Assembly (NCBI GenBank): GCA_002269645.1
Contig: NIVC01000266.1
Coordinates: forward strand, 186,001 to 250,000
Reading direction: 5' to 3'
DNA length: 64,000 bases
Source of the DNA: Macrostomum lignano
Taxonomy: Eukaryota
Shown: piece after piece, positions 2,544 to 62,287 of the stretch
Numbering within the stretch: the first letter of the stretch is position 1
Layout of the letters: each line of letters starts with the position of its first letter
Translations under genes and position numbers: made by a program
Notes under the pieces: generated by a model
What the model saw: only the letters and a program-made list of their open reading frames with translations
The model's database searches: none
What the model was told of the DNA's origin: nothing

Positions 2544-5500
2544 ATGCAACCTGCCATACGTCTTGATACAGCTACTGAGAGGGCTGTGTGCTGTTCGCAA
2601 TTCACAAGCCCCACTGACTTCTGGCTACAGCTAAAAGATGATGATAGTCGATCATTGCAAAAATTGACTTCTGAGTTGACTTCTCTCCATAGCGAAGGAC
2701 TTTTAAAGCCAATAGCTAAAGTCAAAACTTCGGACTTCGTCGCAGTGATTAATTCAGAAAATGTTTATCGCGGCCAAGTGCTTGCTTCTGAATCATCCGA
2801 CTATTATAGGATTTTGCTTGTAGACACTGGTGAGACCATCAATGTCCCTATTCAGTCATTGTTTCTTCTGCCTGAAGAATTCAATGCGTTGAACAGGCAA
2901 GCAGTGCATTGCAAACTACGATTAATCAAGGAACCAGACGGAGGTTGGAAACCTGACGAGTGCCAACGCTTGTGGACGGAGATGAGCTCTCAAGATACCG
3001 ACGTTCTTCAGGCAGTTTTCGTCCCCGATGATTCCGAATCTGTTGAATCTCTTGTCCCGGTGGAACTTTGCAGTCGAACCACTTGCAAGTCCATCAACGT
3101 TAGGTTCGGAATTGCTACTAAAAGCCTTGATTTAGAGTCCAATATGACTCAGATGACCACAAGCACAGGTGTGAACTATCTTGGAGTCGTAAGTCACATA
3201 TCCTCGAGCGGATTAATTTTTGCTCAAAAAGTATCTGACGCCAAAAGACTTCATCAGCTAGAGAGCCAGCTTGAAATTCTAGCTAACGTGCGATTTTCAT
3301 CTCATTCGGATATTGTTCCCAGCGTCTTTGGTGTTGAAGTTGGTGGAAAATACTACCGTGCAGGCCTTCTAGGTAGGTCTGATGACGCCCTAGAAGTTAA
3401 TCTACTGGATTACGGTTCCAACGCTACCATTAAAGTTACTGATTGCTTTGTGATTCCAAGTCAGCTTCAGTATGCTCCTTTGGCAAAAGCCTTCCTTATT
3501 GACAAGCGAGTCAACAATCCGCTCAATGAAAAGCATTTAGCTGAAGTTAGAAACTTCATTGGGTCTCCTGCTATTGTTTCTGTGACGCCAGTAGAGGATT
3601 CTAATTCACTAGGCAATTATGCCGAACTAATTCCATGCAACAGTGGATTGCGCCTCTCCGACTGGCTTGAGACCAAAAACATTTTAAAGGCTGCTGACAC
3701 CGCAAATGGCAATCCGAATTCTCGTGCTACCAGCCAGTTATCTCAAAATGAAATCAAATGCGTTTCAGATGCCGTTCAATCTTTGGAAAACTCAGAAGGA
3801 CTTAGCTTTGTTCCATACGACTATACCAGTTTGAATGCAGGTTGCTCTTACTCTGCTGTGTGCTGCGCGACTGAAGACACCGGCGCTGCCTACTTTCAGT
3901 TGGACAAAGACAAATCTATTCTTGAAATGGTATCAAGTGTTTTAAACAGCAACTCACTAAACGAACTCTCGCTGCTCTCAACTTTCAAAATCGGTGCGCC
4001 AGTTATTTTCAAGCAAAATAATTGCCTTTGCCGAGGCTTGATTCGCTCTGTTAGCTACGATACCAACACATGTCTCATTTTCTCCGTCGACTTTGGCACC
4101 CTTGACACAGTTTCTATGTCAAGCATTTTTGCTGCTTCCAATAAAGTCTGCAACATTCCTGTCTGTTGTGTAAAGGTAGACATTAATGACTTTAGGCTGC
4201 TAAAAAGCTCTCTTAGCTCTGTTTTATCAGGCGCCTGTTGTATTATCAAGATTAATTCCGTTTCAGCTGATTTCATCTCTGCGAGCGTTGCTTTATCAGC
4301 TGACTTAAATGGTTTGACTATTGATCCAAACGGTGTCGAAATCTCAGTTGAGCGAGCAAACTCGACCAGCGCTTTGTCAGGCTCATTTTGTTCTTACGAC
4401 ACCCGCCTAACTCCGCTAAGCATTGCCTACATAGCCAAGTCACCTCCTAACGATTCATTCTTGGCCAACATCACGCACATCGAAAATCTGTGTTCATTTT
4501 ACTTGTTGCTGGACGAAGACGTAGAGCTTTTACGCACTACTATGTCCAAAATCCAAGAAATCGCTAAATCATCATGTAAGCTGGAAGGAGAGTTGCATGC
4601 TGGACAACCATGCCTTGCCATGTATACAGAAAACTTTACTTGGTACCGTGCCGCGCTCATTGCCAATTTAGATAACGCCCACTACGTAGTCAAGTTCGTG
4701 GACTATGGAAACATCGCTCTTGTGCCACAAGACTTTTTGCGGTGTATATCCGACGAGGCTTTAAAATGCAGCGCGTTTGCACTTCACTGCAGCCTTGCAG
4801 ATTGTGACCTCCGCTTCTATAGAGAGGAGGCCATTACGAGTTTTAGAAAGCTTCTTAATAAACAACTGTCCGTCAAAGTCGTCGATAAGGACTCTATCCC
4901 GATTAAGGTCCGATTACAGTTTGAGAAGCACGATTTTCTCACTAGTCTGCATAAACTACCAACTACTGCTTATCAACAAGCTTATTCTAAACATGATGCA
5001 AACGAATTGTATGCGGATCATGTCAAATCCAGTAAAAGCAAACACCTCTTAAATTGCATGGAGTTGAATTGGATTGTTTCAAAAAAATCTTACATTAGTT
5101 CCAGCGAAAGTGTTGTGAGCCATGCATCACCTCTAAAAGATTATAGAAAGCTGCACTTGTGGATTCAGAGCAGCCGAGATCTGGATGAGTTGGCTTCCTT
5201 GCAGAGCCAACTCGACGTTGAGGCTGCCAGCTCAGAGGCATTGACTGCACCTCAGATAGGACAGTTCTGCATTGGTCTGTTCGAAGGCGGCTGGTATCGG
5301 GCCGAGGTAAAAGCTGTCAGCTCCGACTCGATTCGCGTGTTGTTCATCGACTATGGCAACGAAGAGGAAGGCTCGCTAGACGAGCTGCAGTTGAAGGTTT
5401 TGCCGAAGCGTGAAGAGTTGTACCGAGATGCTTTTGCTTTCGAATGCATTCTGCAATCTAGCGATAATTGCTGCTTTAGTACTGACGCCTGCGACAAGAT

Positions 5501-8500
5501 CGTCGAGTATGGAGAGTTGCAGTTCAGCATTGATCCGTCAACTGATTCTGAGCCGCCCACGGTCAGCATACCAAAAGACATTCTGCAGTCTCTTACAGTC
5601 ATTGAAGTCACGGATGCTGCTGCAGCCAACGCAGACAGTGCCGCAGTTATTGAGTCAGGGAAGCAACAGATTGAATCACAAGCCAATAAGTCGGAGACAT
5701 GGGCAGTTTCGAAGAGCACCCAAAGCGAAACATTCACAGGAGTTGTAAGCCTCGTTACACCCTCAGATGATGGTACTAAGCTGCACTTGTGGATTCAGAA
5801 CACCCGAGATCTGGATGAGTTGGCTTCCTTGCAGAGCCAACTCGACGTTGAGGCTGCCAGCTCAGAGGCATTGACTGCACCTCAGATAGGACAGTTCTGC
5901 ATTGGTCTGTTCGAAGGCGGCTGGTATCGGGCCGAGGTAAAAGCTGTCAGCTCCGACTCGATTCGCGTGTTGTTCATCGACTATGGCAACGAAGAGGAAG
6001 GCTCGCTAGACGAGCTGCAGTTGAAGGTTTTGCCGCAGCGTGAAGAGTTGTACCGAGATGTTTTTGCTTTCGAATGCATTCTGCAATCTAGCGATAATTG
6101 CTGCTTTAGTACTGACGCCTGCGACAAGATCGTCGAGTATGGAGAGTTGCAGTTCAGCATTGATCCGTCAACTGATTCTGAGCCGCCCACGGTCAGCATA
6201 CCAAAAGACATTCTGCAGTCTCTTACAGTCATTGAAGTCACGGATGCTGCTGCAGCCAACGCAGACAGTGCCGCAGTTATTGAGTCAGGGAAGCAACAGA
6301 TTGAATCACAAGCCAATAAGTCGGAGACATGGGCAGTTTCGAAGAGCACCCAAAGCGAAACATTCACAGGAGTTGTAAGCCTCGTTACACCCTCAGATGA
6401 TGGTACTAAGCTGCACTTGTGGATTCAGAACACCCGAGATCTGGATGAGTTGGCTTCCTTGCAGAGCCAACTCGACGTTGAGGCTGCCAGCTCAGAGGCA
6501 TTGACTGCACCTCAGATAGGACAGTTCTGCATTGGTCTGTTCGAAGGCGGCTGGTATCGGGCCGAGGTAAAAGCTGTCAGCTCCGACTCGATTCGCGTGT
6601 TGTTCATCGACTATGGCAACGAAGAGGAAGGCTCGCTAGACGAGCTGCAGTTGAAGGTTTTGCCGCAGCGTGAAGAGTTGTACCGAGATGTTTTTGCTTT
6701 CGAATGCATTCTGCAATCTAGCGATAATTGCTGCTTTAGTACTGACGCCTGCGACAAGATCGTCGAGTATGGAGAGTTGCAGTTCAGCATTGATCCGTCA
6801 ACTGATTCTGAGCCGCCCACGGTCAGCATACCAAAAGACATTCTGCAGTCTCTTACAGTCATTGAAGTCACGGATGCTGCTGCAGCCAACGCAGACAGTG
6901 CCGCAGTTATTGAGTCAGGGAAGCAACAGATTGAATCACAAGCCAATAAGTCGGAGACATGGGCAGTTTCGAAGAGCACCCAAAGCGAAACATTCACAGG
7001 AGTTGTAAGCCTCGTTACACCCTCAGATGATGGTACTAAGCTGCACTTGTGGATTCAGAACACCCGAGATCTGGATGAGTTGGCTTCCTTGCAGAGCCAA
7101 CTCGACGTTGAGGCTGCCAGCTCAGAGGCATTGACTGCACCTCAGATAGGACAGTTCTGCATTGGTCTGTTCGAAGGCGGCTGGTATCGGGCCGAGGTAA
7201 AAGCTGTCAGCTCCGACTCGATTCGCGTGTTGTTCATCGACTATGGCAACGAAGAGGAAGGCTCGCTAGACGAGCTGCAGTTGAAGGTTTTGCCGCAGCG
7301 TGAAGAGTTGTACCGAGATGTTTTTGCTTTCGAATGCATTCTGCAATCTAGCGATAATTGCTGCTTTAGTACTGACGCCTGCGACAAGATCGTCGAGTAT
7401 GGAGAGTTGCAGTTCAGCATTGATCCGTCAACTGATTCTGAGCCGCCCACGGTCAGCATACCAAAAGACATTCTGCAGTCTCTTACAGTCATTGAAGTCA
7501 CGGATGCTGCTGCAGCCAACGCAGACAGTGCCGCAGTTATTGAGTCAGGGAAGCAACAGATTGAATCACAAGCCAATAAGTCGGAGACATGGGCAGTTTC
7601 GAAGAGCACCCAAAGCGAAACATTCACAGGAGTTGTAAGCCTCGTTACACCCTCAGATGATGGTACTAAGCTGCACTTGTGGATTCAGAACACCCGAGAT
7701 CTGGATGAGTTGGCTTCCTTGCAGAGCCAACTCGACGTTGAGGCTGCCAGCTCAGAGGCATTGACTGCACCTCAGATAGGACAGTTCTGCATTGGTCTGT
7801 TCGAAGGCGGCTGGTATCGGGCCGAGGTAAAAGCTGTCAGCTCCGACTCGATTCGCGTGTTGTTCATCGACTATGGCAACGAAGAGGAAGGCTCGCTAGA
7901 CGAGCTGCAGTTGAAGGTTTTGCCGCAGCGTGAAGAGTTGTACCGAGATGTTTTTGCTTTCGAATGCATTCTGCAATCTAGCGATAATTGCTGCTTTAGT
8001 ACTGACGCCTGCGACAAGATCGTCGAGTATGGAGAGTTGCAGTTCAGCATTGATCCGTCAACTGATTCTGAGCCGCCCACGGTCAGCATACCAAAAGACA
8101 TTCTGCAGTCTCTTACAGTCATTGAAGTCACGGATGCTGCTGCAGCCAACGCAGACAGTGCCGCAGTTATTGAGTCAGGGAAGCAACAGATTGAATCACA
8201 AGCCAATAAGTCGGAGACATGGGCAGTTTCGAAGAGCACCCAAAGCGAAACATTCACAGGAGTTGTAAGCCTCGTTACACCCTCAGATGATGGTACTAAG
8301 CTGCACTTGTGGATTCAGAACACCCGAGATCTGGATGAGTTGGCTTCCTTGCAGAGCCAACTCGACGTTGAGGCTGCCAGCTCAGAGGCATTGACTGCAC
8401 CTCAGATAGGACAGTTCTGCATTGGTCTGTTCGAAGGCGGCTGGTATCGGGCCGAGGTAAAAGCTGTCAGCTCCGACTCGATTCGCGTGTTGTTCATCGA

Positions 8501-9386
8501 CTATGGCAACGAAGAGGAAGGCTCGCTAGACGAGCTGCAGTTGAAGGTTTTGCCGCAGCGTGAAGAGTTGTACCGAGATGCTTTTGCTTTCGAATGCATT
8601 CTTGAATCTAGCGACAATCGCTGCTTTAGTCCTGACGCCTGCGACAAGATCGTCGAGTATGGAGAGTTGCAGTTCAGCATTGATCCGTCAACTGATTCTG
8701 AGCCGCCCACGGTCAGCATACCAAAAGACATTCTGCAGTCTCTTACAGTCATTGAAGTCACGGATGCTGCTGCAGCCAACGCAGACAGTGCCGCAGTTAT
8801 TGAGTCGGGGAAGCAACAGATTGAATCACAAGCCAATAAGTCGGAGACATGGGCAGTTTCGAAGAGCACCCAAAGCGGAACATTCACAGGAGTTGTAAGC
8901 CTCGTTACACCCTCAGATGATGGTACTAAGCTGCACTTGTGGATTCAGAGCAGCCGAGATCTGGATGAGTTGGCTTCCTTGCAGAGCCAACTCGACGTTG
9001 AGGCTGCCAGCTCAGAGGCATTGACTGCACCTCAGATAGGACAGTTCTGCATTGGTCTGTTCGAAGGCGGCTGGTATCGGGCCGAGGTAAAAGCTGTCAG
9101 CTCCGACTCGATTCGCGTGTTGTTCATCGACTATGGCAACGAAGAGGAAGGCTCGCTAGACGAGCTGCAGTTGAAGGTTTTGCCGCAGCGTGAAGAGTTG
9201 TACCGAGATGCTTTTGCTTTTGAATGCATTCTTGAATCTAGCGACAATCGCTGCTTTAGTCCCGAAGCGTGCGACAAGATTATCGAATTCGGAGAGTTGA
9301 AGTTCAGCATTAATTGTTTATTGGAATTGGGCCTCCCTCGAGCCAGCATAGCGGACGTGTGTCTGAAGTTTTTATATTCTGCTTAA
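2544..9386 (+). CDS. Multi-Tudor domain protein, block 1 (TDRD6/TDRD15/Tud-like; 11 extended Tudor domains)
   Basis: 2280-aa ORF preceded by a splice acceptor (tttcttttttcag, ending 2535). Four divergent Tudor cores (YRGQV..LVDTG; YYRAG..LDYGS; LCRG..VDFGT; WYRAA..FVDYGN) are followed by 7 copies of CIGLFEGGWYRAEV..VLFIDYGN. Orthology was not resolved. Confidence 0.9.
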   Translation: MQPAIRLDTATERAVCCSQFTSPTDFWLQLKDDDSRSLQKLTSELTSLHSEGLLKPIAKVKTSDFVAVINSENVYRGQVLASESSDYYRILLVDTGETINVPIQSLFLLPEEFNALNRQAVHCKLRLIKEPDGGWKPDECQRLWTEMSSQDTDVLQAVFVPDDSESVESLVPVELCSRTTCKSINVRFGIATKSLDLESNMTQMTTSTGVNYLGVVSHISSSGLIFAQKVSDAKRLHQLESQLEILANVRFSSHSDIVPSVFGVEVGGKYYRAGLLGRSDDALEVNLLDYGSNATIKVTDCFVIPSQLQYAPLAKAFLIDKRVNNPLNEKHLAEVRNFIGSPAIVSVTPVEDSNSLGNYAELIPCNSGLRLSDWLETKNILKAADTANGNPNSRATSQLSQNEIKCVSDAVQSLENSEGLSFVPYDYTSLNAGCSYSAVCCATEDTGAAYFQLDKDKSILEMVSSVLNSNSLNELSLLSTFKIGAPVIFKQNNCLCRGLIRSVSYDTNTCLIFSVDFGTLDTVSMSSIFAASNKVCNIPVCCVKVDINDFRLLKSSLSSVLSGACCIIKINSVSADFISASVALSADLNGLTIDPNGVEISVERANSTSALSGSFCSYDTRLTPLSIAYIAKSPPNDSFLANITHIENLCSFYLLLDEDVELLRTTMSKIQEIAKSSCKLEGELHAGQPCLAMYTENFTWYRAALIANLDNAHYVVKFVDYGNIALVPQDFLRCISDEALKCSAFALHCSLADCDLRFYREEAITSFRKLLNKQLSVKVVDKDSIPIKVRLQFEKHDFLTSLHKLPTTAYQQAYSKHDANELYADHVKSSKSKHLLNCMELNWIVSKKSYISSSESVVSHASPLKDYRKLHLWIQSSRDLDELASLQSQLDVEAASSEALTAPQIGQFCIGLFEGGWYRAEVKAVSSDSIRVLFIDYGNEEEGSLDELQLKVLPKREELYRDAFAFECILQSSDNCCFSTDACDKIVEYGELQFSIDPSTDSEPPTVSIPKDILQSLTVIEVTDAAAANADSAAVIESGKQQIESQANKSETWAVSKSTQSETFTGVVSLVTPSDDGTKLHLWIQNTRDLDELASLQSQLDVEAASSEALTAPQIGQFCIGLFEGGWYRAEVKAVSSDSIRVLFIDYGNEEEGSLDELQLKVLPQREELYRDVFAFECILQSSDNCCFSTDACDKIVEYGELQFSIDPSTDSEPPTVSIPKDILQSLTVIEVTDAAAANADSAAVIESGKQQIESQANKSETWAVSKSTQSETFTGVVSLVTPSDDGTKLHLWIQNTRDLDELASLQSQLDVEAASSEALTAPQIGQFCIGLFEGGWYRAEVKAVSSDSIRVLFIDYGNEEEGSLDELQLKVLPQREELYRDVFAFECILQSSDNCCFSTDACDKIVEYGELQFSIDPSTDSEPPTVSIPKDILQSLTVIEVTDAAAANADSAAVIESGKQQIESQANKSETWAVSKSTQSETFTGVVSLVTPSDDGTKLHLWIQNTRDLDELASLQSQLDVEAASSEALTAPQIGQFCIGLFEGGWYRAEVKAVSSDSIRVLFIDYGNEEEGSLDELQLKVLPQREELYRDVFAFECILQSSDNCCFSTDACDKIVEYGELQFSIDPSTDSEPPTVSIPKDILQSLTVIEVTDAAAANADSAAVIESGKQQIESQANKSETWAVSKSTQSETFTGVVSLVTPSDDGTKLHLWIQNTRDLDELASLQSQLDVEAASSEALTAPQIGQFCIGLFEGGWYRAEVKAVSSDSIRVLFIDYGNEEEGSLDELQLKVLPQREELYRDVFAFECILQSSDNCCFSTDACDKIVEYGELQFSIDPSTDSEPPTVSIPKDILQSLTVIEVTDAAAANADSAAVIESGKQQIESQANKSETWAVSKSTQSETFTGVVSLVTPSDDGTKLHLWIQNTRDLDELASLQSQLDVEAASSEALTAPQIGQFCIGLFEGGWYRAEVKAVSSDSIRVLFIDYGNEEEGSLDELQLKVLPQREELYRDAFAFECILESSDNRCFSPDACDKIVEYGELQFSIDPSTDSEPPTVSIPKDILQSLTVIEVTDAAAANADSAAVIESGKQQIESQANKSETWAVSKSTQSGTFTGVVSLVTPSDDGTKLHLWIQSSRDLDELASLQSQLDVEAASSEALTAPQIGQFCIGLFEGGWYRAEVKAVSSDSIRVLFIDYGNEEEGSLDELQLKVLPQREELYRDAFAFECILESSDNRCFSPEACDKIIEFGELKFSINCLLELGLPRASIADVCLKFLYSA
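5150..9310 (+). repeat. Coding tandem repeat, 630-bp (210-aa) unit, 6 full copies plus 1 partial
   Basis: CTGCACTTGTGGATTCAG recurs at 5151, 5781, 6411, 7041, 7671, 8301 and 8931; copies 2-5 look identical by eye. Confidence 0.95.
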
Positions 9387-12960: not shown

Positions 12961-13088
12961 TAAATTTTATCAATACTTGTAGATCCCAAAAGCAAAGTCA
13001 GAATAAGCTGATTTTGCACAGCTCACTTCAGCCCCGTTCAGGCTTTCATTGGATTACTTTGTTACCGAATTCTCCCAGAAGTTGACTA

Positions 13089-14364
13089 CGAAGGGTATTT
13101 CAAGTTCGTAGAAAGTGATAGAAAGCAAGCAGATATCAAAAAGCGGTTTTGCGACACATAATCATCATCTAAATCCGATCTCTCAACGTAATCGCCACCG
13201 ATTTCTATGCACTTTCGCATGCGCTGCAGCCAGCTATCAAAGCAACCCCTAAAATCAGCTTTTTCAATGGAGTTGAGCTGCTCATTCTCAGCAGAAATCA
13301 GCTCATCGCGAGTCTCAAACAACTTTCCACGCAGCGGCTGCTTGATTTTCGGAAATAACCAGAAATCGCACGGCGTCAGATCCGGTGAATAAGGCGGAGG
13401 AGCGCTCAGCAGCTTGATGCCAGAAGCACGAATGTGCTGCACTGTGTTGTTTGCTGTGTGTGCAGGTGCGTTGTCGTGATGCAGGAAGTAGCGCGTAGCT
13501 CAGCTTTGCCACGGCCAGCTGCGATGGAATTGAACACAGCAGGCAAGCAGCTGGTCACATACCAATCAGAGGTCACAGTGCGGCCTTGCTCAACTGGCAC
13601 TGAGGCCACAATGCCTCTGGGCGAGAAGAAAATCGCGAACATGATTTTCCCAGCTGACCTCACCCGCTTCGCCTTTTGGGGAGGTGGGGCTCCTTTGAGT
13701 GACCAAACCATCGACTGTGATTTAGTTGGCGGGTCGTACTGATGGAACCAGGCTTCATCACCTGTTACGATGTTCTGGAAGTTCGCAGATGCTCCATCTT
13801 TGAACTGATCCAGGAAATTTCTGCAGAAATCAATTTCTGCTGCTTCTGCTCAGGCGAGAGGATTCGTGGCACCCATTTGGCAGCTTTCTTGGTGACACCA
13901 AGATCTTCGTGCAAGATCCTCCAAATCGATGTGGCATCAATGCCCAGACTCTCCTCCATCCTCTCGATCGTCAGTCTTGCATCCTCGTTCAACGCCGACT
14001 GCACAGCAGCCATATTCAAGGAGTCTGTTGATGTTCTTGGACGACCTTCTCTTGGCTTGTCAGCCAGATCGAAATGGCGGGCTCTAAAGCGACCAAACCA
14101 CTTGTGCACAGTGCTGAGGGATGGTGCTTCATCTTGCAGTACAGTCCTCATCTCAGCAGCAGCTTCATTTGCGCTAGAGCCTCGACGAAACAGGAACAGC
14201 ATTATGGCTCTTGACTGATCGCAGATTTCTGGTGGCCATTTCAATCAATTTTGCTGAAAATGTAGCTGCAGGCTGTAGATATATGAAATAGTATTTGTGA
14301 AAAGTTTCAAGGCTATAGCTTTATGCAAAGACGGCTTTTCTACGAACTTCTGAAATACCCCTCG
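13089..14364 (-). mobile_element. Full-length (1276 bp) mariner with frameshifted transposase
   Basis: TA TSD at 13087 and 14365 and ~28-bp imperfect TIRs. The transposase is split over three frames: HTH and WVPRIL (13765-14244), IVTGDEAW..KIMFAIFF, and HHDNA..YSPDLTPCDFWLF. Confidence 0.92.
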
Positions 14365-15201
14365 TAAACGTGCATTGTCAAAATTGAACCAGAGTTTGTC
14401 AAAATTGAAGCTTGATCTGTCAATATTTTGAGTGCCCGACCATAGACTGTCAATATCGAAGAGGAGTTTGTCAGTTTCGAAGTTCTCCTTGTTCAAAATC
14501 GAGGGTGTGCTCGCCAACTGAGATCTTCGATATGATGCAGCAAACTCATATCATTGGAGGTTGCTCTAATTGGGGAGGGGGGCCCAATTTTGCTTTAAGA
14601 CAATGCATCTCCTCATTTAAAGCAGATGGTGCTGACAGCCGTCGAGTCATGGGGGTGGGAAGTACTTCCGCATCCGCCATGCCCCCCATGCCAGACCTCA
14701 GCCTATGCGACTTCTTCCTCTTTACCCGCATCAAGGACTCAATGCAGGGCCAGTGTTTCAGATAAGTTGAACTAGGCATATGAAGTGGGAATCGCAACTA
14801 TGACAAACAATGACATGAGTGCTAGAATTGAGGAGAGGCTCGTGTGGCGATGGCAGAAGTGCATGGAGGCTGAGGGTGTATATTTTAAGTGAAATGATGC
14901 CTAAGATAAGTTTAAAGTTTTTTGTCTGCTGGTTATCATTTTAAAGTCGTTATGTAATACACAGAACTTTTTGTACAACCCTCGTATTTACGAGTAGGAA
15001 ACCAATCTTTAAGCTGAGCTTGGCCTTGAATGTTTAGTTATTTTTAAGTTATAGAATGTTTTTGCTTCAAATCAGTAAGTTATTTATGTATGTCGCGGTG
15101 TCGCTTAGCGTTTTGGTGCAACATTTTAGGAGTAATCGTGATTTTGCTACGTTGTAATATATATAAAGTATATATTTGTCATCCTCTCCTACTTTTTTCA
15201 G

Positions 15202-16183
15202 TGATTCTCCGAACTTACGGAAAAGCAGAGTCGAATGCAATAGCCCCTGCCCTGTCACGATGAATTTCGTGGCCAATGCTTTTGAGCAACTTCTGCAACT
15301 GGGCCCGATAGAATTTACTGTCCAAAGTGACATCATTTTTGACCTACCAGTCGTCTCGGTTGACAAAAAAATCATGGATTTTTTGGTGGAAAATAATCAA
15401 CAATTGAGTCTCACTAGGACGGAAAGTAATAATGCCCTCGAGCTGGATGCAAAACATGATTTAATCCATCCGGAATTTGAAATTGACGCAGATAATATCC
15501 TCATAAAACAGCAAAAATGGATAGCTTCATTTACGGGCGTTGTTAGTTCTGCCACTCAGGATTTAAAGAACCTGCACCTATGGGTTCAAAACAGCAGCGA
15601 TTTTGATAAACTGACTTCATTACAAAATCTGCTTGACGCTGATGCTGACAGCTGTAAAGCTTTGGATAAGCCAAAGGCTGGACAGTTCTGCATTGGCCTG
15701 TTCGAAGGCGGCTGGTACCGAGCCGAGGTAAAGGCTGTCAGCTCCGACTCGATTCGCGTGTTGTTCATCGACTATGGCAACGAAGAGGAAGGCTCGCTAG
15801 ACGAGCTGCAGTTGAAGGTTTTGCCGCAGCGTGAAGAGTTGTACCGAGATGCTTTTGCTTTCGAATGCATTTTGAAATCTAGTGACAACCGCTGCTTTAG
15901 TCCTGACGCCTGCGACAAGATCATCGAGCATGGAGAGTTGCAGTTCAGCATTGATCCGTCAACTGATTCTGAGCCGCCCACGGTCAGCATACCAAAAGAC
16001 ATTCTACAGTCTCTTACAGTCACTGAAGTCACGGATTCTGCTGCAGCCAACGCAAACAATACCGCAGTTATTGAGTCAGGGAAGCAACAGATTGAATCAC
16101 AAGCCAATAAGTCAAAGACATGGGCAGTTTCGAAGAGCACCCAAAGCGAAACATTCACAGGAGTTGTAAGCCGCACCTTCTAG
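15202..16183 (+). CDS. Multi-Tudor protein block 2, part a (starts at a splice acceptor, ends at a frameshift-induced TAG)
   Basis: Acceptor ctacttttttcag at 15201; a diverged repeat half followed by one near-identical Tudor unit (GQFCIGLFEGGWYRAEV); no ATG at the ORF start. Confidence 0.7.
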
Positions 16184-18798
16184 ATGATGGTACTAAGCTG
16201 CACTTGTGGATTCAGAACACCCGAGATCTAGATGAGTTGGCTTCCTTGCAGAGCCAACTCGACGTTGAGGCTGCCAGCTCAGAGGCATTGACTGCACCTC
16301 AGATAGGACAGTTCTGCATTGGTCTGTTCGAAGGCGGCTGGTACCGAGCCGAGGTAAAGGCTGTCAGCTCGGACTCGATTCGCGTGTTGTTCATCGACTA
16401 TGGCAACGAAGAGGAAGGCTCGCTAGACGAGCTGCAGTTGAAGGTTTTGCCGCATCGTGAAGGGTTGTACCGAGACGCTCTTGCATTCGAATGTATTCTG
16501 GAATCTTCCAGCAAGTGCCGATTCACTTCGAATGCTGATGCTTTAATCACTGCCTTTGATTGTCTTACGGTAAACATTGTGCAAGATTTTTCTTCTGGAC
16601 TACGCACTATTGGTATCGACTCCGACCTTCTGGCATCTTTGGAATCGAGGATTTGCAGTTTGGAACCCATCAGTGCTGCTTATGATGAGCCTCAGAAGGA
16701 TGCTCCAGTCAGTTCATCTACCAATGACATTCGAGAAGTCAGAGATGCATCGCAGCATGCTATAATGGAGCACGATTCTCGTACAAAAATTTGGCGAGTA
16801 AAGCGACGTCAACTTACTGGCACTTTTACTGGTACTGTGTGTGCGTGTGTCCCAACTGGTGACAATAAGGAGTACCTGCGCCTTTGGGTTCATCGAACCT
16901 GCGATAGTGTAAAGCTAAAGGCTCTGCAAGACTTGTTCAAAATTGAAGCCGATTCAGCGCCAGATTTAAAACAGCCGAGCCTTGGCCAGACTTGTCTTGT
17001 TTTTCACAAGGACCAATGGTGCCGTGCCGAGATTCTTGCCACGTCTTCTGTGACAATTGAATTGTTTCTTCTGGACTATGGTATTGAAGTGAAGGGCTCA
17101 CCTAGTATTTTTAGACTAAAACCTTTGCCCTACAAAGAGGAGCTTTACTGTGAATCATTTGCTTTCGAGTGCATTCTGCCTTGTCCTGGCGTGAATCAGA
17201 TTATAGGACCTGTTGCTCAACACAGTTTGTGCGCTAATAACACTGCAGAAGAATCTACAGAGTTTTGTGCTATAACTAATGATAATGTAGATAAAAATTG
17301 TGCTCACATGAAAGAAGAAGCATATACCACTACCTTAAGCATTTCTGTCCCTCAGTGTAAATGGAGCGTCTCCAAAAAACATTTGTTCGGCTTGGTTTCC
17401 GCTATGGTTGTTTTCGCTATTCAAGTTCAAGACGATCCGAGACGTCTTCGCTTGTGGATTCAGAGCAGCCGAGATCTAGATGAGCTGGCTTCTTTACAGA
17501 GCCAACTAGATATTGAGGCAGCCAGCTCAGAGGCTTTTACTGCACCTCAGATAGGACAGTTCTGCATTGGCCTGTTCGAAGGAAGCTGGTACCGAGCCGA
17601 GGTAAAGGCTGTCAGCTCCGACTCGATTCGCGTGTTGTTCATCGACTATGGCAACGAAGAGGAAGGCTCGCTAGACAAGCTGCAGTTGAAGGTTTTGCCG
17701 CAGCGTGAAGAGTTGTACCGAGATGCTTTTGCTTTCGAATGCATTCTGCAATCTAGCGATAATTGCTGCTTTAGTACTGACGCCTGCGACAAGATCGTCG
17801 AGTATGGAGAGTTGCAGTTCAGCATTGATCCGTCAACTGATTCTGAGCCGCCCACGGTCAGCATACAAAAAGACATTCTGCAGTCTCTTACAGTCACTGA
17901 AGTCACCAATTCTGCTGCATCTTTGGCTTCTATCAATAATAACAAATTGAAACCGGCCGTGCTACCAGCCAGTACGAGTATCTTTTTCGACGGGGAAAAT
18001 AATGAAAATTTTCATAAAAGCTGGTGCAAAGTCCCATTGACGCCAATAAGTTACGAATCAGGTAGCGATCGTCCAGAAAACTCAGAAGTTTTGGCCACCG
18101 TTTGCTGTCTTCAACCCATCACCAACTGCTCCAAACAATCGAACACCTGCAGCAGCGAGGCAGAAAAGCGGCAGCACCAGCAATACAGACCTCGACTGCG
18201 GTACACTCCAGATCAGTTGCGTTCTGTGTTCGCTAGTATGGTACATGATTATGGTTGCACCATTGTGCCTACACCAGTTCCGCTGCCAGGCCGTTACTCT
18301 GTTATTATCCTGCCGTCATCAAACTCCAGCCAACTGATGGTGCACCTGCTGCCGCAGTCTCTCCAGCAGGTGGATCGGTTAGCTAAGCGCATGCACTTCT
18401 GGTACAATAAGCTTGGCTTGCTTATCAAGCCTGTGACCAAGTTGTACCCAGGAAAGTCTGTTGCTTTCTTCACCATGAAATCCCATGGTGGTGGTGAATG
18501 GTACCGCGGTCGCGTACTGTCCATCGATACTCGTAACTCTCAAGAGGTCTCCGCCACCGTTTTGGCAGTGGACTACGGCTTTGTGTCGTCTGGCCTACTG
18601 ACTAGTTTCATTCGCGAGTTGCCACCGGACCTGACAGGACCAGAATGGCCAGCTGCCATCTGCATCTGTAGATTGGCTAGCAAGGACGTGTTGCCGCAAC
18701 AGCCGTCTCTGAAACGCGCCGGCATTGAAGTACTGTCTGATGGCACTTGCTGTCTCTTGCCGCCTTCTAAAAACGCTGACAGGAATGTTGAGAAATAA
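16120..18798 (+). CDS. Multi-Tudor protein block 2, part b (4 Tudor domains), continuing part a across a -4 nt frameshift
   Basis: Two more copies of the 630-bp-family Tudor, one diverged Tudor (WCRAEI..LLDYGI) and a C-terminal Tudor (EWYRGRV..AVDYGF); stop at 18796-18798. Confidence 0.75.
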   Translation: MGSFEEHPKRNIHRSCKPHLLDDGTKLHLWIQNTRDLDELASLQSQLDVEAASSEALTAPQIGQFCIGLFEGGWYRAEVKAVSSDSIRVLFIDYGNEEEGSLDELQLKVLPHREGLYRDALAFECILESSSKCRFTSNADALITAFDCLTVNIVQDFSSGLRTIGIDSDLLASLESRICSLEPISAAYDEPQKDAPVSSSTNDIREVRDASQHAIMEHDSRTKIWRVKRRQLTGTFTGTVCACVPTGDNKEYLRLWVHRTCDSVKLKALQDLFKIEADSAPDLKQPSLGQTCLVFHKDQWCRAEILATSSVTIELFLLDYGIEVKGSPSIFRLKPLPYKEELYCESFAFECILPCPGVNQIIGPVAQHSLCANNTAEESTEFCAITNDNVDKNCAHMKEEAYTTTLSISVPQCKWSVSKKHLFGLVSAMVVFAIQVQDDPRRLRLWIQSSRDLDELASLQSQLDIEAASSEAFTAPQIGQFCIGLFEGSWYRAEVKAVSSDSIRVLFIDYGNEEEGSLDKLQLKVLPQREELYRDAFAFECILQSSDNCCFSTDACDKIVEYGELQFSIDPSTDSEPPTVSIQKDILQSLTVTEVTNSAASLASINNNKLKPAVLPASTSIFFDGENNENFHKSWCKVPLTPISYESGSDRPENSEVLATVCCLQPITNCSKQSNTCSSEAEKRQHQQYRPRLRYTPDQLRSVFASMVHDYGCTIVPTPVPLPGRYSVIILPSSNSSQLMVHLLPQSLQQVDRLAKRMHFWYNKLGLLIKPVTKLYPGKSVAFFTMKSHGGGEWYRGRVLSIDTRNSQEVSATVLAVDYGFVSSGLLTSFIRELPPDLTGPEWPAAICICRLASKDVLPQQPSLKRAGIEVLSDGTCCLLPPSKNADRNVEK

Positions 18799-20728
18799 TA
18801 TCGTTTGCAACCTACTTTGTTCAGCACTTAGCTAATTAATTCAGGTTTTAGATAAGCAAAATAACTACGCTTTTTTTAAGTTGTTCCATGCAGAAAAGTC
18901 AAGGTCCAAAGGCAGAATAAAAAAAACCAACTACAAGAACTGCCTCTGATAAGTATATAAAACTTTTTAGTGTATACTTATTTTCTTTCTAAAACAGCTG
19001 AGTAATCTTAGTAGTTTTTAGTGTTCGATGACATTTACTATAACGTATCACACAGCTTGATCCCTCTGCATGGGTAGTCTATCTTTGTTGCTGCTAAATT
19101 GCTATTTTTCTGTAATTATCTTTTTATCGTTTTTTCGTTTAAAAAATTTTGCTTAATAATTTTCAAACCTATTCAAAAATTGGATTTTTTCAAACTTATA
19201 GAAGGCTAATATAATATTCCCTCGTATTTATAGATAGGTGCTCAACTCTGTCTAACTATTTGCATTTTACTACTTTAAGTAGTTCTGAGAATTTCTGTTG
19301 TGTAACTGAATTTACAGTTCTAGCCCTACTCAGTTTTCTAGTTTAAGAGTACCCCGGTGTTTTCCTTGTTGGACTGCTGCTCTCCGCTTTTTGAGAGTGG
19401 AGCCGTAATAATAAACGTTTCTGAAGTTTGTTTGGTTTGCAACGTTGAGTTTTAGTGTTTTTGTATTCTGTTTGGAAAATTCATTAGAATGTGTGTTGGT
19501 CTTTATTTTTTTGAATTCTAGGACTAACATTATATAATGGGTTGTAAAGAGATTGGTATTTATCTCTTACAGCAAGACAAAAATCCAATATAATCAATAC
19601 TTACGGTTATGCTCTCCTCACCTTTGCTTTGAGCTCATACTTGCTTGACATTGACAAATAGTTTTTAGTGATAATAGAGCCACTATAAACTACCTTTAGG
19701 CGCGTCTTGCACTACATAATCCCCGTCATCATTATCCCAGGCCTTCTATTCTGGCAACTCAAGTCGATGTGCCAGCTAAATTTATAGCAAATCCCTGGAT
19801 CGTATACCCAAAATAAAATCCCATGTGAATCTCTCCACCTTTCTCCACATTCCGTGGCCCGTATATCTTTGAGCTGCCCAGCGCTTAGGCAACTGCCTTG
19901 TATTTTCTCCCATTCTGTTCAGAATTGTCAGCCGGAAGCTGCTTCATGAAATATTCAGCGCACCAGATGAGAGACAGTCTGGGTATTCCTGGCAGAGAAT
20001 TGGCACTTAACTCGCTCTTCCCTCATCTACTCTTAGTGGCCGCTCCCGATTCCCAAAGCCACTCTTAGCGGCCGTGTTGTCTTGTTGACCAACTGAGGCA
20101 TGGATGAAGCAGCTGCTTCACTTTTTTAATAGTTTGCTATTTTCTAAGACTAAGAATTCCCACTGCGTCCTGAGAATACTGAGATGCTTTAAATAGACAG
20201 TAGTCGGAATCAAATGCTACCTGTTTAGTTTATTGTTCGTTTAATCTGGTTTTCAATTGTTTGAGCGGATCTGAAATCTTTTTCCCTATAATTTCATCCA
20301 ATTTGCACCTGCAGAAAAGTAAACTGGCCGGAAATATAAATTATGTCACGGAAAATCTCTGAATAGTTTGCTCTTGCATTGCATTGAATAGTGGAACTAC
20401 TTGTAAATGCCCAGGAGAGTGGTTCATTTGCAGAACGCCTGCTGCGTTCCATTTTAAACGTTGAATGGAATCGATTCAACATGCATCATGCATCTACGCT
20501 ATTCTGAAAAGCTTGAGTATAATCTAACCATTCATTTGATCAAGGAGTGGATGGATAGCTTGACAATCTGCGGAGTCAACTTTTAGATATTTCAATCATA
20601 ATTTACTATTTTTACTCGAATAAACGGTGATATCCAGACAGAAAGTTTTCTACCCCGCAGCTTCTGTTTAGGGCCAAACTAAAGTTGCGGTCTGCAAAAT
20701 AGTGCTATTGTTTACTACTATAATCTTA

Positions 20729-21023
20729 CATGACCCTCTCTGGTCACGGCTGCTTCTCCAGGCACCAGTACCTGCAGGGCAACGCCACCAACGCCACCTG
20801 TAGTTTCTGCAACTCAGGTGACGAAACCGCTGAGCATTTCGTCAGCATCTGTCCCGCCTTCACGCGGGCCAGACTCACTTACCTCGGGCCACACACATCT
20901 ATTACTGAAGCGTGCAAACCCGAAAACTTTAATCAGCTCATGCGCTACCTTCGGGCCACCCGCAGGGCTGAACTCTCCTTTCCAGAGAGCACTATAGCTG
21001 CTGGCGACACTGGGGGACCTCCC
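20729..21023 (+). repeat. 295-bp direct repeat of 26506-26800 (ORF2 C-terminus) at the 5' end of the retroelement
   Basis: The two copies are identical apart from 3 substitutions seen by eye. Confidence 0.95.
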
Positions 21024-21541
21024 CCCTGCACGCGAAGGCGTATTCAGCATGCCAGTGAAGTATGAGACAGACTAGGCCCATGGGCTAAGGTCTGCGATGC
21101 TTCACGCCTGCCCCTATCTTCAGCAGGTCAAGGCTGGTGGGAGGTCTGCACCCTCTATTTGCCTCTGGCAGCCGCAGACCCCCCACGCTGTCTCGCAAGT
21201 CGACCCAGGGTACTCGTCCCCGCGTGTGTTCAAGGCAGTCCCTAGGGCTGCTGGACAGACTGGGCTCCGGCGCTGGCGACCCTATCCAGTGGCTTCGGCC
21301 GAATTTGGGTATGCGGGTCTGGCTCGCCAACCTGCAGGCCGTGGTACTGCTCAACGTACTCTCTAATGCCTAAGGTGTTGACCGTCCCGATGGGCTGGAA
21401 GGCCGGGGAGTAGTCCGGTCGCAAGCGGTCCCCCTCCTGGTGTCGGGCCAGCCTTGAGGCTGCTATTGGCCTACTTCCCGGTCAGGTGGAGCGGCCGGGT
21501 GGGTACCGCGCCCCTTTGAGGGAGCCCACCAACCTTTTATC

Positions 21542-23047
21542 ATGGCCTTCGAGCCGATTATGGATAACAAAGCTTTTTCTAGGGACGGTGACCCTTCTAA
21601 ACCCCAACCTCAGTCCGAAGGACCGGCCGGCCCTGCTGGCAGATCCCAACCGACTGATTCAACTGTGGCAAAGGAAGGACCGGCTGGCTCTGCTGGCAGA
21701 TCCGACCAGAGCTACCAAACTCATAATACCCAAAGACCTGCCAGCTCCGCTGGTGGATCTAAGGGAACCGCGAGCTCTGAGCCTAAAGGACCGGCCAAAT
21801 CTGCCAGATCCGATGAAGCTCAGCGGGCTCGGCTTGAGCGCAAACGCGCTAAACAACGCGCCAAAAGGCAGGCCAAGAAGGGAGCTGCGGGGGCCAAAGC
21901 GGCGGCGTCCACCATGGATGCTGAAGCGACTGGCGTCCCAAGGCAACCAGACGGGCCGGCCGGTGTAAGCTCCGGTAGTTCAGCGGCGGCGCTCCCTGGA
22001 GATGCTGCTGCGGCTGCTGAGGCCGAAACCACGGCGCAACAAATGGCCACTGCCAACAAGGAGGTTCCTTCGGGAGCTACCTTTGCGGCGAAGGCCAAGA
22101 CCAAAATCCCGGGAGTGATCATCCAAGGTCGCGACCAGGACTGGACCACTGATCAGCTTCAAAAAGTGTGGAGTGCTGTTGACTCCTATCTGATTGAGCT
22201 GACTGTCGAGGAGGGAATCTCCATCGGCATTGAGCGGATGGTGCTGCGAAGCACATTCGTTCTTATTGCTCTTAGCAGCGAGGAGGACGCTCGGCAGCTG
22301 CTCCAGCGGCTACCGACGGTCTCCTTGGATGCTGACCTTGGCGGAGCTCTTTTTCTTCGCGAGGGCCGGCGTCCAAAGACGATACCCTATGTGGTTTTCG
22401 TCCCTGCTAAGAGCACCGCAGCTGGACCAGACGTTATTCGCCGGGTCCTACTGCGTCTGAACCCCGACCTCCCTGCTAGTGGACTGGTGTATCACCGTAA
22501 ACTCCGCAGGGGGGAGACGGGCAACTCAATTGTCCTCGGCCTTTCCAGCACTTGGGCGAGTCGGTACCCTAATGGATCCTCTTTCCAGCTGGGTGCCCTC
22601 AAGCTCAAGATGCGCCGAGGAAAGTCTGCCAAAGGGAAGGCTACTGCCAACCCCGGCATCTCCGGCAAGAGCGGGGCGCAGTCTAAGGCCCAAGGAAAGG
22701 CGCAAGCCGATCCCAAAGCCAAAGCTGCATCTCGCCCCTCTGCTAGCAGCAGTTCGGCGACCGCGGTAACGGCTCCGGCCAAGCCCCGGGAACCAAACCT
22801 GCCAGTCGGAGAAGGAGTTGAGGACGAGGCCGGGTCTTCGGAATCCGAGCTCTCCTCGGCCACCCTGGTGGGGTCTGAAGGTAAAGATGCAGGTGAGGAA
22901 GCTTCCTCCATCCTGTCATCGGAGCCTGAGGACTCTGCTGGGGGGGCCGGTGGGGGTGAGGAGGCCATGGACGTCGACCAACTCCCATCTCCCAGTCAAG
23001 CCCCAGCGGCCTGGGACGAGGACGATCTGTTGTCCAAGTCTCCTTGA
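21542..23047 (+). CDS. Retrotransposon ORF1 (gag-like, 501 aa)
   Basis: ATG-initiated ORF directly upstream of ORF2; basic patch RARLERKRAKQRAKRQAKK and low-complexity termini; no CCHC knuckle seen. Confidence 0.8.
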   Translation: MAFEPIMDNKAFSRDGDPSKPQPQSEGPAGPAGRSQPTDSTVAKEGPAGSAGRSDQSYQTHNTQRPASSAGGSKGTASSEPKGPAKSARSDEAQRARLERKRAKQRAKRQAKKGAAGAKAAASTMDAEATGVPRQPDGPAGVSSGSSAAALPGDAAAAAEAETTAQQMATANKEVPSGATFAAKAKTKIPGVIIQGRDQDWTTDQLQKVWSAVDSYLIELTVEEGISIGIERMVLRSTFVLIALSSEEDARQLLQRLPTVSLDADLGGALFLREGRRPKTIPYVVFVPAKSTAAGPDVIRRVLLRLNPDLPASGLVYHRKLRRGETGNSIVLGLSSTWASRYPNGSSFQLGALKLKMRRGKSAKGKATANPGISGKSGAQSKAQGKAQADPKAKAASRPSASSSSATAVTAPAKPREPNLPVGEGVEDEAGSSESELSSATLVGSEGKDAGEEASSILSSEPEDSAGGAGGGEEAMDVDQLPSPSQAPAAWDEDDLLSKSP

Positions 23048-23086
23048 TGGCCCTGGGCTCTAGCCAGAAATTGCATTTAATACAGT

Positions 23087-26000
23087 ATGACTAAGCTCCA
23101 CGCTGCCAAAGGAGCGACATTCTGTCTGCAAATTAATTTACAGCATTGCGTATCTGCGTCAGTAAATCTGATGAGATTGCTGAGCTGTACAGGCCAGGCC
23201 TCATCCTGATCCAGGAACCCTGGATGCGCAACGGTAAGTTGCCCAACATTCCCTCTGGCTACTCTGATTTTTATGTGTGTGGCCCGGGGAACAGCCGCCC
23301 TAGAGCGGCTATCCTCGCTGCTAGCCATCTCCAGGCTTGGCTGAGGACTGATCTCTCTGATGGAGACCTTTGCGTCATCCAATCTAATCATTTCTCTCCG
23401 CGTACGTGTCTTGTTGCCTCGGTTTATATCCCAGGCGACAGAGACCCTGCTCCTGAGAGTTTACTGCGCCTCGCGCAGTACTGCGAGTCCCAGAACGCTG
23501 AGCTGTGCTTAGGGGGCGACCTCAACGCGCACCACAAGCACTGGGGCAGCAAAGATACCAACACTAGAGGAGAGGAGCTTCTGGCCCTCATCTCTAACAC
23601 AAACCTCATGCTCTGCAACCGCGGCAGCACTCCTACCTTTAATAATGGCAGATGGACCGAGGTCCTCGACGCCACACTCGTTACCCCAAGACTCTTTGAC
23701 AGAGTTGAGGAGTGGAGAGTCTGGTCTGAGGAGCCCTCCCTGTCTGACCACTGCTTTATCGCCTTTAACATCGCGGACACTAAAACCCAGTCTCCGATCA
23801 CTTGGAGACGCAATATCCGCAACACTGATTGGGCGGCCTACAAGGCTGCCCTTGATCTGCACCTGCAGGAACTCACGGACTTACGTCCGATTGAGACCTG
23901 CGAGGATGTGGATCATATGGCTGAGACGCTGACAGGTTGCATTATTGAAGCCTACGAAGCGGCTTGTCCTGCTCGCGCCTACAAAGGCAAGACCTCGGCG
24001 CCGTGGTGGAACCCGGAGCTGGGGAAACTCAGGCGGAAGGCCAAAAGCCTTCATCGCCGTGCCATGAAGACCGGAAACCCGGAGGACATGGAGCTTTTCC
24101 GGCAAGCCTCCCGCAATTTCAAATCTGAAGTGCGCAAGGCCAAGGAATGTAAGTGGCGCCAATTCTGCAATGAATTGATCAAGACAGACCTACTTCTAGG
24201 CTTGTCAAGGCCCTTACAATGGACAAAATGTCCAAATTAGCCATGATCAAAAAAGATGATGGCTCTCTTACTAAAGACCCTGAAGAAGTGCTTCAGCATA
24301 TGCTTAGCACATTCTTCCCGAGGGTACCTACTGCTAGACCGGAGCCCAACCATTCGATGGATGGAGCCACCCTAGCGGCGGGCATTGTCACTGAAGACCT
24401 AATCGCTCGTGCGGTCAGAACCTTCAAGCCCTTCAAATCTCCTGGACCTGATGGTATCTACCCTGTTCTCCTTCGTGAAGCAGCCAAGATACCCTCGTTC
24501 CTGAGACTCACCCGCAATCTTATGCGGGCCTCTATCCAGCTGGGATACGTTCCCAAATGCTGGACTGAAGCTCGGTAGTCTTTATTCCCAAACCTGGGAA
24601 GGGTGACTACCAAAGCGTCAAGGCCTTCCGGCCTATTAGCTTAACGTCAGCAATGCTTAAGCTCACTGAGAGGCTTATTCTCTGGCGGCTGCTGTCCTGC
24701 GAGCTGACAGCGATGCCCCTCAGCAATAATCAGCACGCCTTCCGTACCGGGAGTCGACTGACAGCGCCCTGCATGCGATTGTCGAGAAGATTGAAAGGGC
24801 GGTACTGGGTGACGGTTACGCTCTGGCTCTCTTTCTTGACATTGTTGGCGCCTTCGACAACGTTATCTTTGAAGCGTTTCAGAGGGCCCTTCAAAATCGC
24901 AAAGCTCATGCTACCCTCATACGGTGGATCATGTACATGATCTCCAACCGTACGGTCACTGCCCAACTTCTTGGCAAACTGCCTCCACCAGAGTCTGTAA
25001 GGGTGGACCCCAAGGCGGAGTCCTCACCCCGACGCTCTGGAACCTGGTCATGGACGCTCTTTTGAGTGACTCCCGACCCGACCCCGTCTCAAAGTCGGGT
25101 ATGCTGATGACGTCACGGCCATTGTGGCAGGACCGTCTCCCAGCACGCTCAGGGATCTGATGCAGAGCTTTATCCGCAAAGCAGAATCCTGGGCCAATGA
25201 CAATGGTCTGGAACTCTCTGAGCCCAAAACCGTTGCCATTATGTTTACCAGCAGACTACGCTGGAACATACGTCCTCTGCAGCTCTACGGCAGAGATATT
25301 GCCTTCGCGCATCAGACCAGATGTCTCGGGGTCATACTTGACCACCGGCTCAACTGGTCCTCCCATGTGAAAGCAAAAGCCAAGCGTGCCTCAGACATCC
25401 TGGCCCAGCTCCGACGAGCACTTGGCACTTCTTGGGGTCTATCCCCAAAGCGGCTTTGGTGGATCTATACTTCCGTAGTTACTGGTAGACCTGCCATTAC
25501 GTACGCCTCTGTTGTCTGGGTTAGCGCTACCCAGGTCAAAAGCCATGCAGACCTGCTCAACACGATCCAAGGCAGAGCGTGTAGGCTCATCTGCAACGCC
25601 ACCAGGTCCACGCCCTTTGCTGGCATGGGGGCCTTCCTTAATCTTCCGCCTCTTGACCTCTTCATCAGGGGTGAGGCGGCTAGAACGACGCGGCGTCTAA
25701 TTGATGCCGGCGTCAAATTCATTTACATGAGAACACCTGCTAAGCGGAACCTTGTCCCGCATAGCGATCTGTGCCTCAACTTTCTCAACGAGTGTCAGGC
25801 CAATCGCGTCTTCACCGATGGCATTGCCTCAACGCTCAACCTGAGACAGCGCTACTCCGTAGCTATCGACTCGCGCGATAACATCAATGACCAATGGAAC
25901 CCTGGTGAGCTTCATTGCTACACCGACGGTTCTAAGCAGTCAGTCAACACCGGCTTTGGTGTTGGAATCTTTCTGAACGGGAGGGTCATCGCTACCCACG

Positions 26001-33850: not shown

Positions 33851-34282
33851 GTAATGAAAGTGTCATTTAAAATATTAAGAAGCATCATGGTAGAATAAAA
33901 GAAGCGTCATGTCAGACATGAAGGGTGTCATGTAAAAATTAAATGAAGCTATAATGCTGTGCTGGGGAGAATTACTGAGACGTCAAGGCTCTCAGAGAAT
34001 AACTGAGATTACGGGGGGGGGGGGTTTCTGAGATGTCAAAGCAAAAGTCAGAGGCTACTTCAAAGTTCATGTACTTTACTCAATTTTTTATTGCATTCTT
34101 TGTTGGCTCGCCACGGGGGGGCGCTGATAAAAAAAGCGTAATGTAAAAAATAAAAGAAGCTTCATGTCGAACTTAAGAGATTCATTTGGGAATCCCTACG
34201 ATGTCGAGGCTTGCAGGGAATCGCTATAATGCTGTAGTAGTGCTATAATGACTCTCAGAGAGAATTACTGAAATTTCAATGC

Positions 34283-41878: not shown

Positions 41879-62287
<20,409 letters not shown>

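Follow-up and report, generated by a model that had tools for sequence, protein, structure and literature searches.

An array of near-identical extended Tudor modules in a putative Tud/TDRD6-like gene of the flatworm Macrostomum lignano

The genome of the flatworm Macrostomum lignano contains a gene in which seven tandem copies (the last one partial) of a 630-nucleotide (nt) unit, each encoding an extended Tudor (eTudor) domain, lie within a single open frame. The gene (BOX15_Mlig022547g1; protein PAA86760.1, annotated 'hypothetical protein, partial') is on contig NIVC01000266.1 of assembly Mlig_3_7 (GCA_002269645.1), and the window analysed is the 64,000-nt stretch at positions 186,001 to 250,000 of the forward strand; coordinates are those of the window, and gene features are on the + strand unless stated. 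The genomic DNA of PAA86760.1 matches the window at 100% identity over 28.8 kb. The longest open reading frame (ORF) of the window, ORF1 (2544–9386), is a single uninterrupted frame of 2280 codons with 11 Tudor domains. The locus is probably a Tud/TDRD6-like gene with a homogenised eTudor module multiplied in frame, the product of which would act as a multivalent scaffold for ligands carrying symmetric dimethyl-arginine (sDMA).

The array (5112–9314) contains 6.67 in-frame units of 630 nt, with nucleotide homology beginning at 5148, and each unit encodes 210 amino acids (aa) comprising an eTudor domain of ~165 aa and a linker of ~45 aa. Tandem Repeats Finder (TRF; longest period 500) did not report the array, and a repeat search together with an offset comparison was used instead; the repeat search reveals seven copies spaced at exactly 630 nt from 5112. 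Units 2–5 (5742–8261) have 0 differences per 630 nt in pairwise comparisons (0 in 2520 nt). Unit 1 (5112–5741) has 19 differences from the inner units, 15 lying within the first 36 nt at the array boundary, unit 6 (8262–8891) has eight differences from units 2–5, and unit 7 (8892–9314) is a 423-nt partial copy, 95.5% identical, that ends at unit coordinate 423 and is followed by 24 unrelated codons and then the stop codon (9384–9386). Comparison of the sequence with itself at an offset of 630 nt gives no mismatches at 5432–7950, so that a block of 3149 nt (5432–8580; 5.0 unit lengths) is perfectly periodic and holds five perfect copies in another register. The edge units are mosaics. Unit 1 has a 5′ part with the same 'SS' variant as unit 7 and matches the inner units exactly beyond that, starting at unit coordinate 321, and unit 6 is identical to units 2–5 over its first 319 nt, after which seven of its eight differences are common to unit 7. 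Chance cannot account for this pattern of identity. An earlier note made from the sequence alone had described seven tandem 630-bp units inside one giant exon, with copies 2–5 identical even at synonymous sites, and the anatomy given here agrees with it on each of these points, the array lying wholly within the open frame of ORF1. Six identical 128-codon ORFs, one per unit, are also present on the opposite strand (5351–8887, − strand); these are mechanical by-products of the repeat and do not indicate genes.

A Pfam scan of the ORF1 protein identifies 11 TUDOR (PF00567) stretches (E value 7.8e-158), corresponding to the seven array units and to four divergent N-terminal domains whose divergence the same note had recognised. 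No non-Tudor domain passes on any single stretch of ORF1, and neither a staphylococcal nuclease (SNase) Pfam domain nor, at E≤0.01, the zf-MYND domain that marks TDRD1 is found in it; RING, LOTUS, KH and helicase domains, the marks of TDRD4/RNF17 (Qin), TDRD5/7, TDRKH and TDRD9/12, are absent by Pfam from both ORF1 and the downstream ORFs. ORF1 thus encodes multiple eTudor domains with no accessory domain, as far as can be read from an annotated coding sequence (CDS) that is 5′-partial, with an acceptor-like tract 8 nt before the ATG. This tract (ttttttcag, 2527–2535), read from the sequence, could serve as a splice acceptor, either in cis or for trans-splicing of a spliced leader. In GenBank the CDS begins at 2538, and trans-splicing affects 38.8% of M. 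lignano genes (PMC5730564). An island of high GC content with runs of C and of G (2020–2260) is located ~300 nt upstream of the tract in surroundings of 31% GC, and may represent a promoter or leader exon. A search of the window against Rfam gave no match.

The fold of the unit was examined by modelling a 186-residue segment covering one unit with AlphaFold2, using 25 aligned eTudor segments. The model has a mean predicted local distance difference test score (pLDDT) of 89.7 and a predicted template modelling score (pTM) of 0.81, and shows the staphylococcal-nuclease-like strands and helix flanking a Tudor core that form the ~180-aa eTudor fold. In a Foldseek comparison with the Protein Data Bank the top 36 matches are all eTudor domains; these include, with E values of ~1e-10, the TD3 domain of mouse TDRD1 with an sDMA peptide of MILI (4b9w), SND1, and eTud11 of Drosophila Tudor with Aubergine (3nth), as well as human SND1 bound to PIWIL1 peptides. 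Template modelling (TM) scores are 0.6–0.7 to 4b9w, 3omc, 3nth and 5m9n over 170–190 columns. Among single domains, SND1 also provides the best sequence match to the unit (E value 8.6e-10), and in the HMMER alignment F, Y, F, Y and N of the unit stand opposite the methyl-arginine cage positions of SND1, which we take to be F740, Y746, Y763, Y766 and N768.

Cage residues were read from a hidden Markov model alignment of all 16 Tudor domains at the locus, five of which are encoded downstream of ORF1. The F-Y-F-Y-N cage is complete in all seven array units, each of which also contains the motif F..WY..F.DYGN, and in three related copies further downstream. Three of the four N-terminal domains lack a complete cage, these being Tudor 1 (2550–3062; N-Y-L-T-E), Tudor 2 (3138–3566; Y-Y-L-Y-S) and Tudor 3 (3813–4253; F-C-S-F-T), all of them degenerate. 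Tudor 4 (4422–4964) has a complete cage (Y-Y-F-Y-N) and is the best match of the ORF1 protein to the Drosophila Tudor and TDRD1 structures. Since all units retain the four aromatic residues and the asparagine, which bind sDMA in solved eTudor domains, the array supplies seven of the eight competent predicted pockets of ORF1, and nearly the whole predicted binding capacity of the protein would derive from one amplified module. Model confidence, structural matches and cage residues together uphold the proposal that the units are eTudor domains with an intact aromatic cage and a retained F..W-Y..F.DYGN motif.

A second Tudor-coding stretch, referred to as locus 2 (15202–18798), encodes five more Tudor domains in two overlapping ORFs (15176–16183 and 16120–18798). 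It opens directly after a strong acceptor-like tract (ttttttcag, 15193–15201) and has its first ATG at 15260; the protein PAA47151.1 begins just after this tract and A0A1I8HJ07 begins at the ATG. The first ~60 codons have a weak and tentative similarity to the C-terminal half of an eTudor domain (E value 1.2). A BLAST search of the unit against the window reveals three more unit copies here, on the same strand and ~6 kb past the array: copy a (15569–16162) is 89.6% identical to the array unit with the cage F-Y-F-Y-N, copy b (16163–16506) is 94% identical, and copy c (17451–17919) is 94.7% identical, the cage being intact in both of the latter. The other two domains are degenerate, one a divergent Tudor (16810–17340; cage H-C-L-Y-I) and the other a unique C-terminal Tudor with an incomplete cage (18304–18732). 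A six-frame search for more Tudor pieces upstream of the gene, at 9.4–15.2 kb and beyond 18.8 kb found none.

Two further copies of the gene are available for comparison. Contig NIVC01004554.1 of the same assembly matches the window at 98.1% identity across 10.6 kb, and in it locus 2 is one intact frame of 1198 codons (PAA47151.1). The third copy is represented by the UniRef protein A0A1I8H6A6, which is known as a protein only, differs from both the window and NIVC01004554.1 in its unique C-terminal region, and has six units where the window has seven. Comparison of the array unit with copies a, b and c gives a proportion of differing synonymous sites (pS) of 0.12–0.22 and a ratio of the non-synonymous to the synonymous proportion (pN/pS) of 0.18–0.33, and comparison of locus 2 between the window and the other gene copy gives a pS of 0.012–0.032 and a pN/pS of 0.34–0.40. 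Among units 2–5 pS is 0 and pN/pS is not applicable. From these divergences the unit family is old and under purifying selection, and with a pS of 0 against 0.012–0.032 between gene copies the inner units coalesce after the gene-copy split. The earlier proposal of a very recent expansion therefore stands for the inner units, which are younger than the divergence of the gene copies, and has to be modified in that older family members are present downstream and the mosaics and array-specific variants point to ongoing homogenisation; the three downstream copies place the beginning of the expansion in a pre-existing multi-copy family.

The two arrays are internally uniform and mutually different. 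All six units of A0A1I8H6A6 have SS at unit residues 20–21 and G at residue 206, and in the window units 2–6 have NT at residues 20–21 and units 1–5 have E at residue 206. Together with the recombinant edges, this points to repeated unequal exchange or gene conversion. In the mechanism that we propose, one 210-codon module of eTudor domain and linker would have been multiplied in frame to approximately seven tandem copies in a large exon, with unequal crossing-over or gene conversion among the 630-bp repeats maintaining their identity or having recently created it; the identical inner copies would be the most recent, and the edge copies would be mosaics that escaped homogenisation. A single recent burst, by slippage or by one or two unequal exchanges, could instead have produced copies that have had no time to diverge and whose identity is not maintained. 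The zero differences among the inner copies fit such a burst, as do the recent genome duplication and recent repeat activity described for this species (PMC12147562), but repeated exchange is the simpler account of recombinant edge units and of two arrays that are each uniform while differing at the same unit positions and in number. We regard the burst as rather unlikely on balance, and the two models are not mutually exclusive. The copy-number polymorphism that had been suggested is likewise borne out in part: the number of units does vary, with seven here and six in A0A1I8H6A6, but because several sequence-distinct gene copies are present in the organism the variation may lie between duplicated copies rather than between individuals.

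Multi-Tudor proteins are believed to structure germ granules through simultaneous contacts with numerous methylated PIWI tails. The array may similarly act as a multivalent scaffold that recruits proteins carrying sDMA, with PIWI proteins the most probable partners, to granules of the germline or of neoblasts, and its copy number would set the valency of the scaffold; the PIWI ligand, the granule localisation and the selective value of copy number are all predicted. Homology makes it reasonable to infer a PIWI and germ-granule scaffold role with germline expression. The units might alternatively bind sDMA on non-PIWI proteins (Sm, Vasa or other RG-rich proteins) and function outside the piRNA pathway. 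SND1, to which the unit is best matched in sequence, does bind non-PIWI sDMA ligands such as E2F (5m9o); however, Tudor-only proteins with many eTudor domains are described as metazoan germline and piRNA factors (PMC12147562) and tud, TDRD6 and TDRD15 are the nearest relatives that have names, making a different client unlikely. M. lignano has 14 Piwi-like genes and 63 eTudor genes, the latter being the largest eTudor gene set reported (PMC12147562). An array whose copy number varies by exchange would provide a natural experiment on the relationship of valency to granule assembly and transposon control. M. lignano is amenable to transgenesis and RNAi, so that the valency question is testable in this animal.

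Several observations weigh against the scaffold gene interpretation. No expression, localisation or binding data for Mlig022547 were found in the literature and supplements searched, and only three amino-acid positions are diagnostic between the two arrays. Locus 2 is frameshifted in the NIVC01000266.1 copy, where a net loss of 4 nt (16171–16176) by comparison with the other gene copy shifts the frame between copies a and b. The three public gene models disagree as to whether ORF1 ends at 9386 or joins 15202–18798, and the domain count of the protein is consequently 11 or ~16. Contig NIVC01004554.1 begins at a point equivalent to window position 9892, 578 nt beyond the end of the array, suggesting that the assembly broke in the array region, and the perfect identity of the inner units could have been exaggerated in part by consensus polishing.

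The last two of these points raise the prospect that the array is real and that its copy number or perfect identity was made by the assembler or polisher. Mlig_3_7 is a PacBio-based, highly repetitive and redundant assembly with an RNA-seq-guided annotation, the redundancy arising because the sequenced line carries duplicated chromosomes (PMC5730564); it is a hard target for assembly, and dozens of other tandem arrays are present in the window. However, at 4.2 kb and with unique flanks the array is spannable by the 130x PacBio reads, and the differences in the edge units are ordered and mosaic rather than random errors. The frame is kept across 2280 codons, and the independent protein model A0A1I8H6A6 also contains an array, of six units with its own consistent variants. 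An artefact of number or identity is thus decidedly unlikely, and it is highly improbable that the array does not exist.

The frameshift, which is absent from the other gene copy, would also fit a redundant duplicate turning into a pseudogene in a polyploid-like genome, in which case the array would have no selected role. A mariner remnant and a LINE (long interspersed nuclear element) in and beside the locus are consistent with such decay, and the substitutions in array units are mostly non-synonymous, though very few. Nonetheless, ORF1 is open over 6843 nt including all seven units, pN/pS in the unit family is 0.18–0.40, the cage is intact in all ten unit copies (seven in the array plus a, b and c), and a transcript-derived gene model covers the region. 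A decaying copy is accordingly very unlikely. The array region is probably transcribed, the GenBank model being derived from RNA-seq-guided annotation (PMC5730564).

The relationship between ORF1 and locus 2 is complicated by the public models. PAA86760.1 (2787 aa) joins the two via a 7897-nt intron from 8284–8557 to 16183–16455, the two ends of which occupy homologous sites in unit 6 and copy b, leaving the junction ambiguous over 274 nt; a GT..AG pair fits it at two places. We rejected this intron as real splicing, given that an ambiguous repeat-to-repeat junction is typical of a spliced aligner in repeats; it is probably a spliced-alignment artefact, and the deposited 2787-aa protein is likely not a real isoform. 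In A0A1I8H6A6 the two coding stretches are bridged by an ORF that runs antisense to the mariner remnant; this bridge is implausible and was rejected as a prediction artefact. The lesson for annotation is that repeats of this kind can yield both wrong introns and broken contigs.

The two stretches may nonetheless belong to a single gene: they are on the same strand, the acceptor ending at 15201 calls for a partner further upstream, and ORF1 is not followed by a + strand AATAAA until 10252, 866 nt beyond its stop codon, whereas the first AATAAA after the locus 2 stop codon (18916–18921) is 118 nt downstream. Three observations favour two genes. ORF1 ends in a stop codon of its own; each stretch has an acceptor followed by a close ATG (2527–2535 and 2544; 15193–15201 and 15260), giving the appearance of spliced-leader acceptors; and the donors in phase for the acceptor at 15201 near the end of ORF1, identified by eye, are all weak (exon end at 9295, 9301 or 9358). 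One gene and two genes appear about evenly balanced, and the array itself is unaffected by the choice.

A HMMER search of 1.84 billion representative proteins gives two close matches, both from M. lignano, and ~1700 distant ones. Outside Macrostomum, the nearest relatives are giant proteins that contain Tudor domains only and come from nemerteans, hemichordates, amphioxus, molluscs, brachiopods, cnidarians and insects; those with names are a mixture of 'protein tudor-like', TDRD15, TDRD6 and tud, at 25–35% identity. In a 2025 survey all proteins of this type fall into a single unresolved orthogroup, OG164, with up to 19 eTudors per protein (PMC12147562). A literature search found no description of the M. 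lignano array or of homogenised Tudor arrays in general.

Similar arrays are present in other members of the family. In 155 of the closest multi-Tudor homologues scanned by window-wise BLASTP for repeats at least 95% identical over ~90–120 residues, such internal repeats are found in 20 (about one in eight), three of which are Macrostomum proteins. The 20 include Hydra vulgaris TDRD6 (XP_065670678.1), with seven copies at a spacing of 212 aa, two proteins from ENA (six copies spaced at ~235 aa and four at 197 aa), medaka TDRD6 (three copies, 307 aa), a cockroach tud (two copies, 604 aa) and a Saccoglossus protein (two copies, 206 aa). At the DNA level (CP147949.1; 37940–42154 of the extracted stretch) the Hydra array has ~6.6 uninterrupted units of 636 nt at the 3′ end of the gene. 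Its inner units differ by 0–3 nt, units 2 and 3 being identical and units 4 and 5 differing from them by 1–2 nt. Like the flatworm array it has one eTudor domain and linker per unit (212 aa) and near-identical inner units, although it is situated in a cnidarian gene of 41 kb with introns. The Hydra units resemble one another far more closely than they resemble the flatworm unit, so the Hydra array arose independently; no description of it was found in the literature searched. The flatworm array, itself previously undescribed, is therefore one instance of a mode seen repeatedly and independently in the Tudor family.

That such arrays recur in widely separated animals suggests that the family evolves in this way generally, and trees built from single domains would misread such a history. 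We suggest tentatively that Tud/TDRD6-like genes across Metazoa repeatedly and independently build concertedly evolving arrays of near-identical eTudor domains, with copy number as a fast-evolving and possibly polymorphic valency dial for PIWI-binding germ-granule scaffolds; if so, copy number might track transposon load or the number of PIWI paralogues.

Among characterised systems, the flatworm gene resembles Drosophila Tud, TDRD6 and TDRD15 in encoding a large Tudor-only protein of at least 11 domains mainly from one large exon, with the cage intact in most C-terminal domains and degenerate in some N-terminal ones, and the best sequence and fold matches include eTud9–11 of Tud. The domains of Tud and TDRD6 are old and mutually divergent, and the solved Tud domains are each 16–21% identical to the unit, whereas the seven flatworm domains are near-identical at the nucleotide level. 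The cage residues of SND1 (Tudor-SN) align one to one with those of the unit, but SND1 has a single Tudor domain embedded in staphylococcal-nuclease repeats, for which ORF1 has no Pfam match. The in-frame units, identical centre, mosaic divergent edges and copy-number differences are shared with concertedly evolving coding tandem repeats in general, which are minisatellite-like domain arrays. In the flatworm the unit is a complete domain predicted to bind ligand, so that a change in copy number would alter binding valency directly.

Between the two Tudor-coding stretches, in what is either a spacer or an intron, there is a remnant of a mariner (Mos1-type) transposase (13086–14244, − strand), identified by HTH_48 (E value 5.7e-14) and a partial DDE match to Transposase_1 (E value 3.1e-6). 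It is decayed and split over three frames, and its presence in the contig of the other gene copy shows that it is older than the gene-copy split. Beyond locus 2 is a non-LTR (long terminal repeat) retrotransposon (21023–26506) with an endonuclease (23146–24240) and an RNase H (within 25124–26827); ~5.5 kb of it is missing from the otherwise collinear NIVC01004554.1, and the gene copies therefore differ by an insertion or deletion. The region from 28500 to 64000 is a very dense minisatellite field with extreme strand skews, in which the long 'ORFs' are repeat by-products. TRF reports 26 rows scoring at least 200 across 26.8–63.8 kb, some of which represent one array at two periods, and the arrays include a 23-mer repeated 100 times (31612–33912), a 45-mer repeated 39 times (43894–45684), a 42-mer repeated 77 times (46896–50083) and a 20-mer repeated 97 times (51779–53675). 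An annotated gene for a G-protein gamma subunit (PF00631) is located at 28269–28798 on the − strand, and two such genes are annotated on the contig of the other gene copy.

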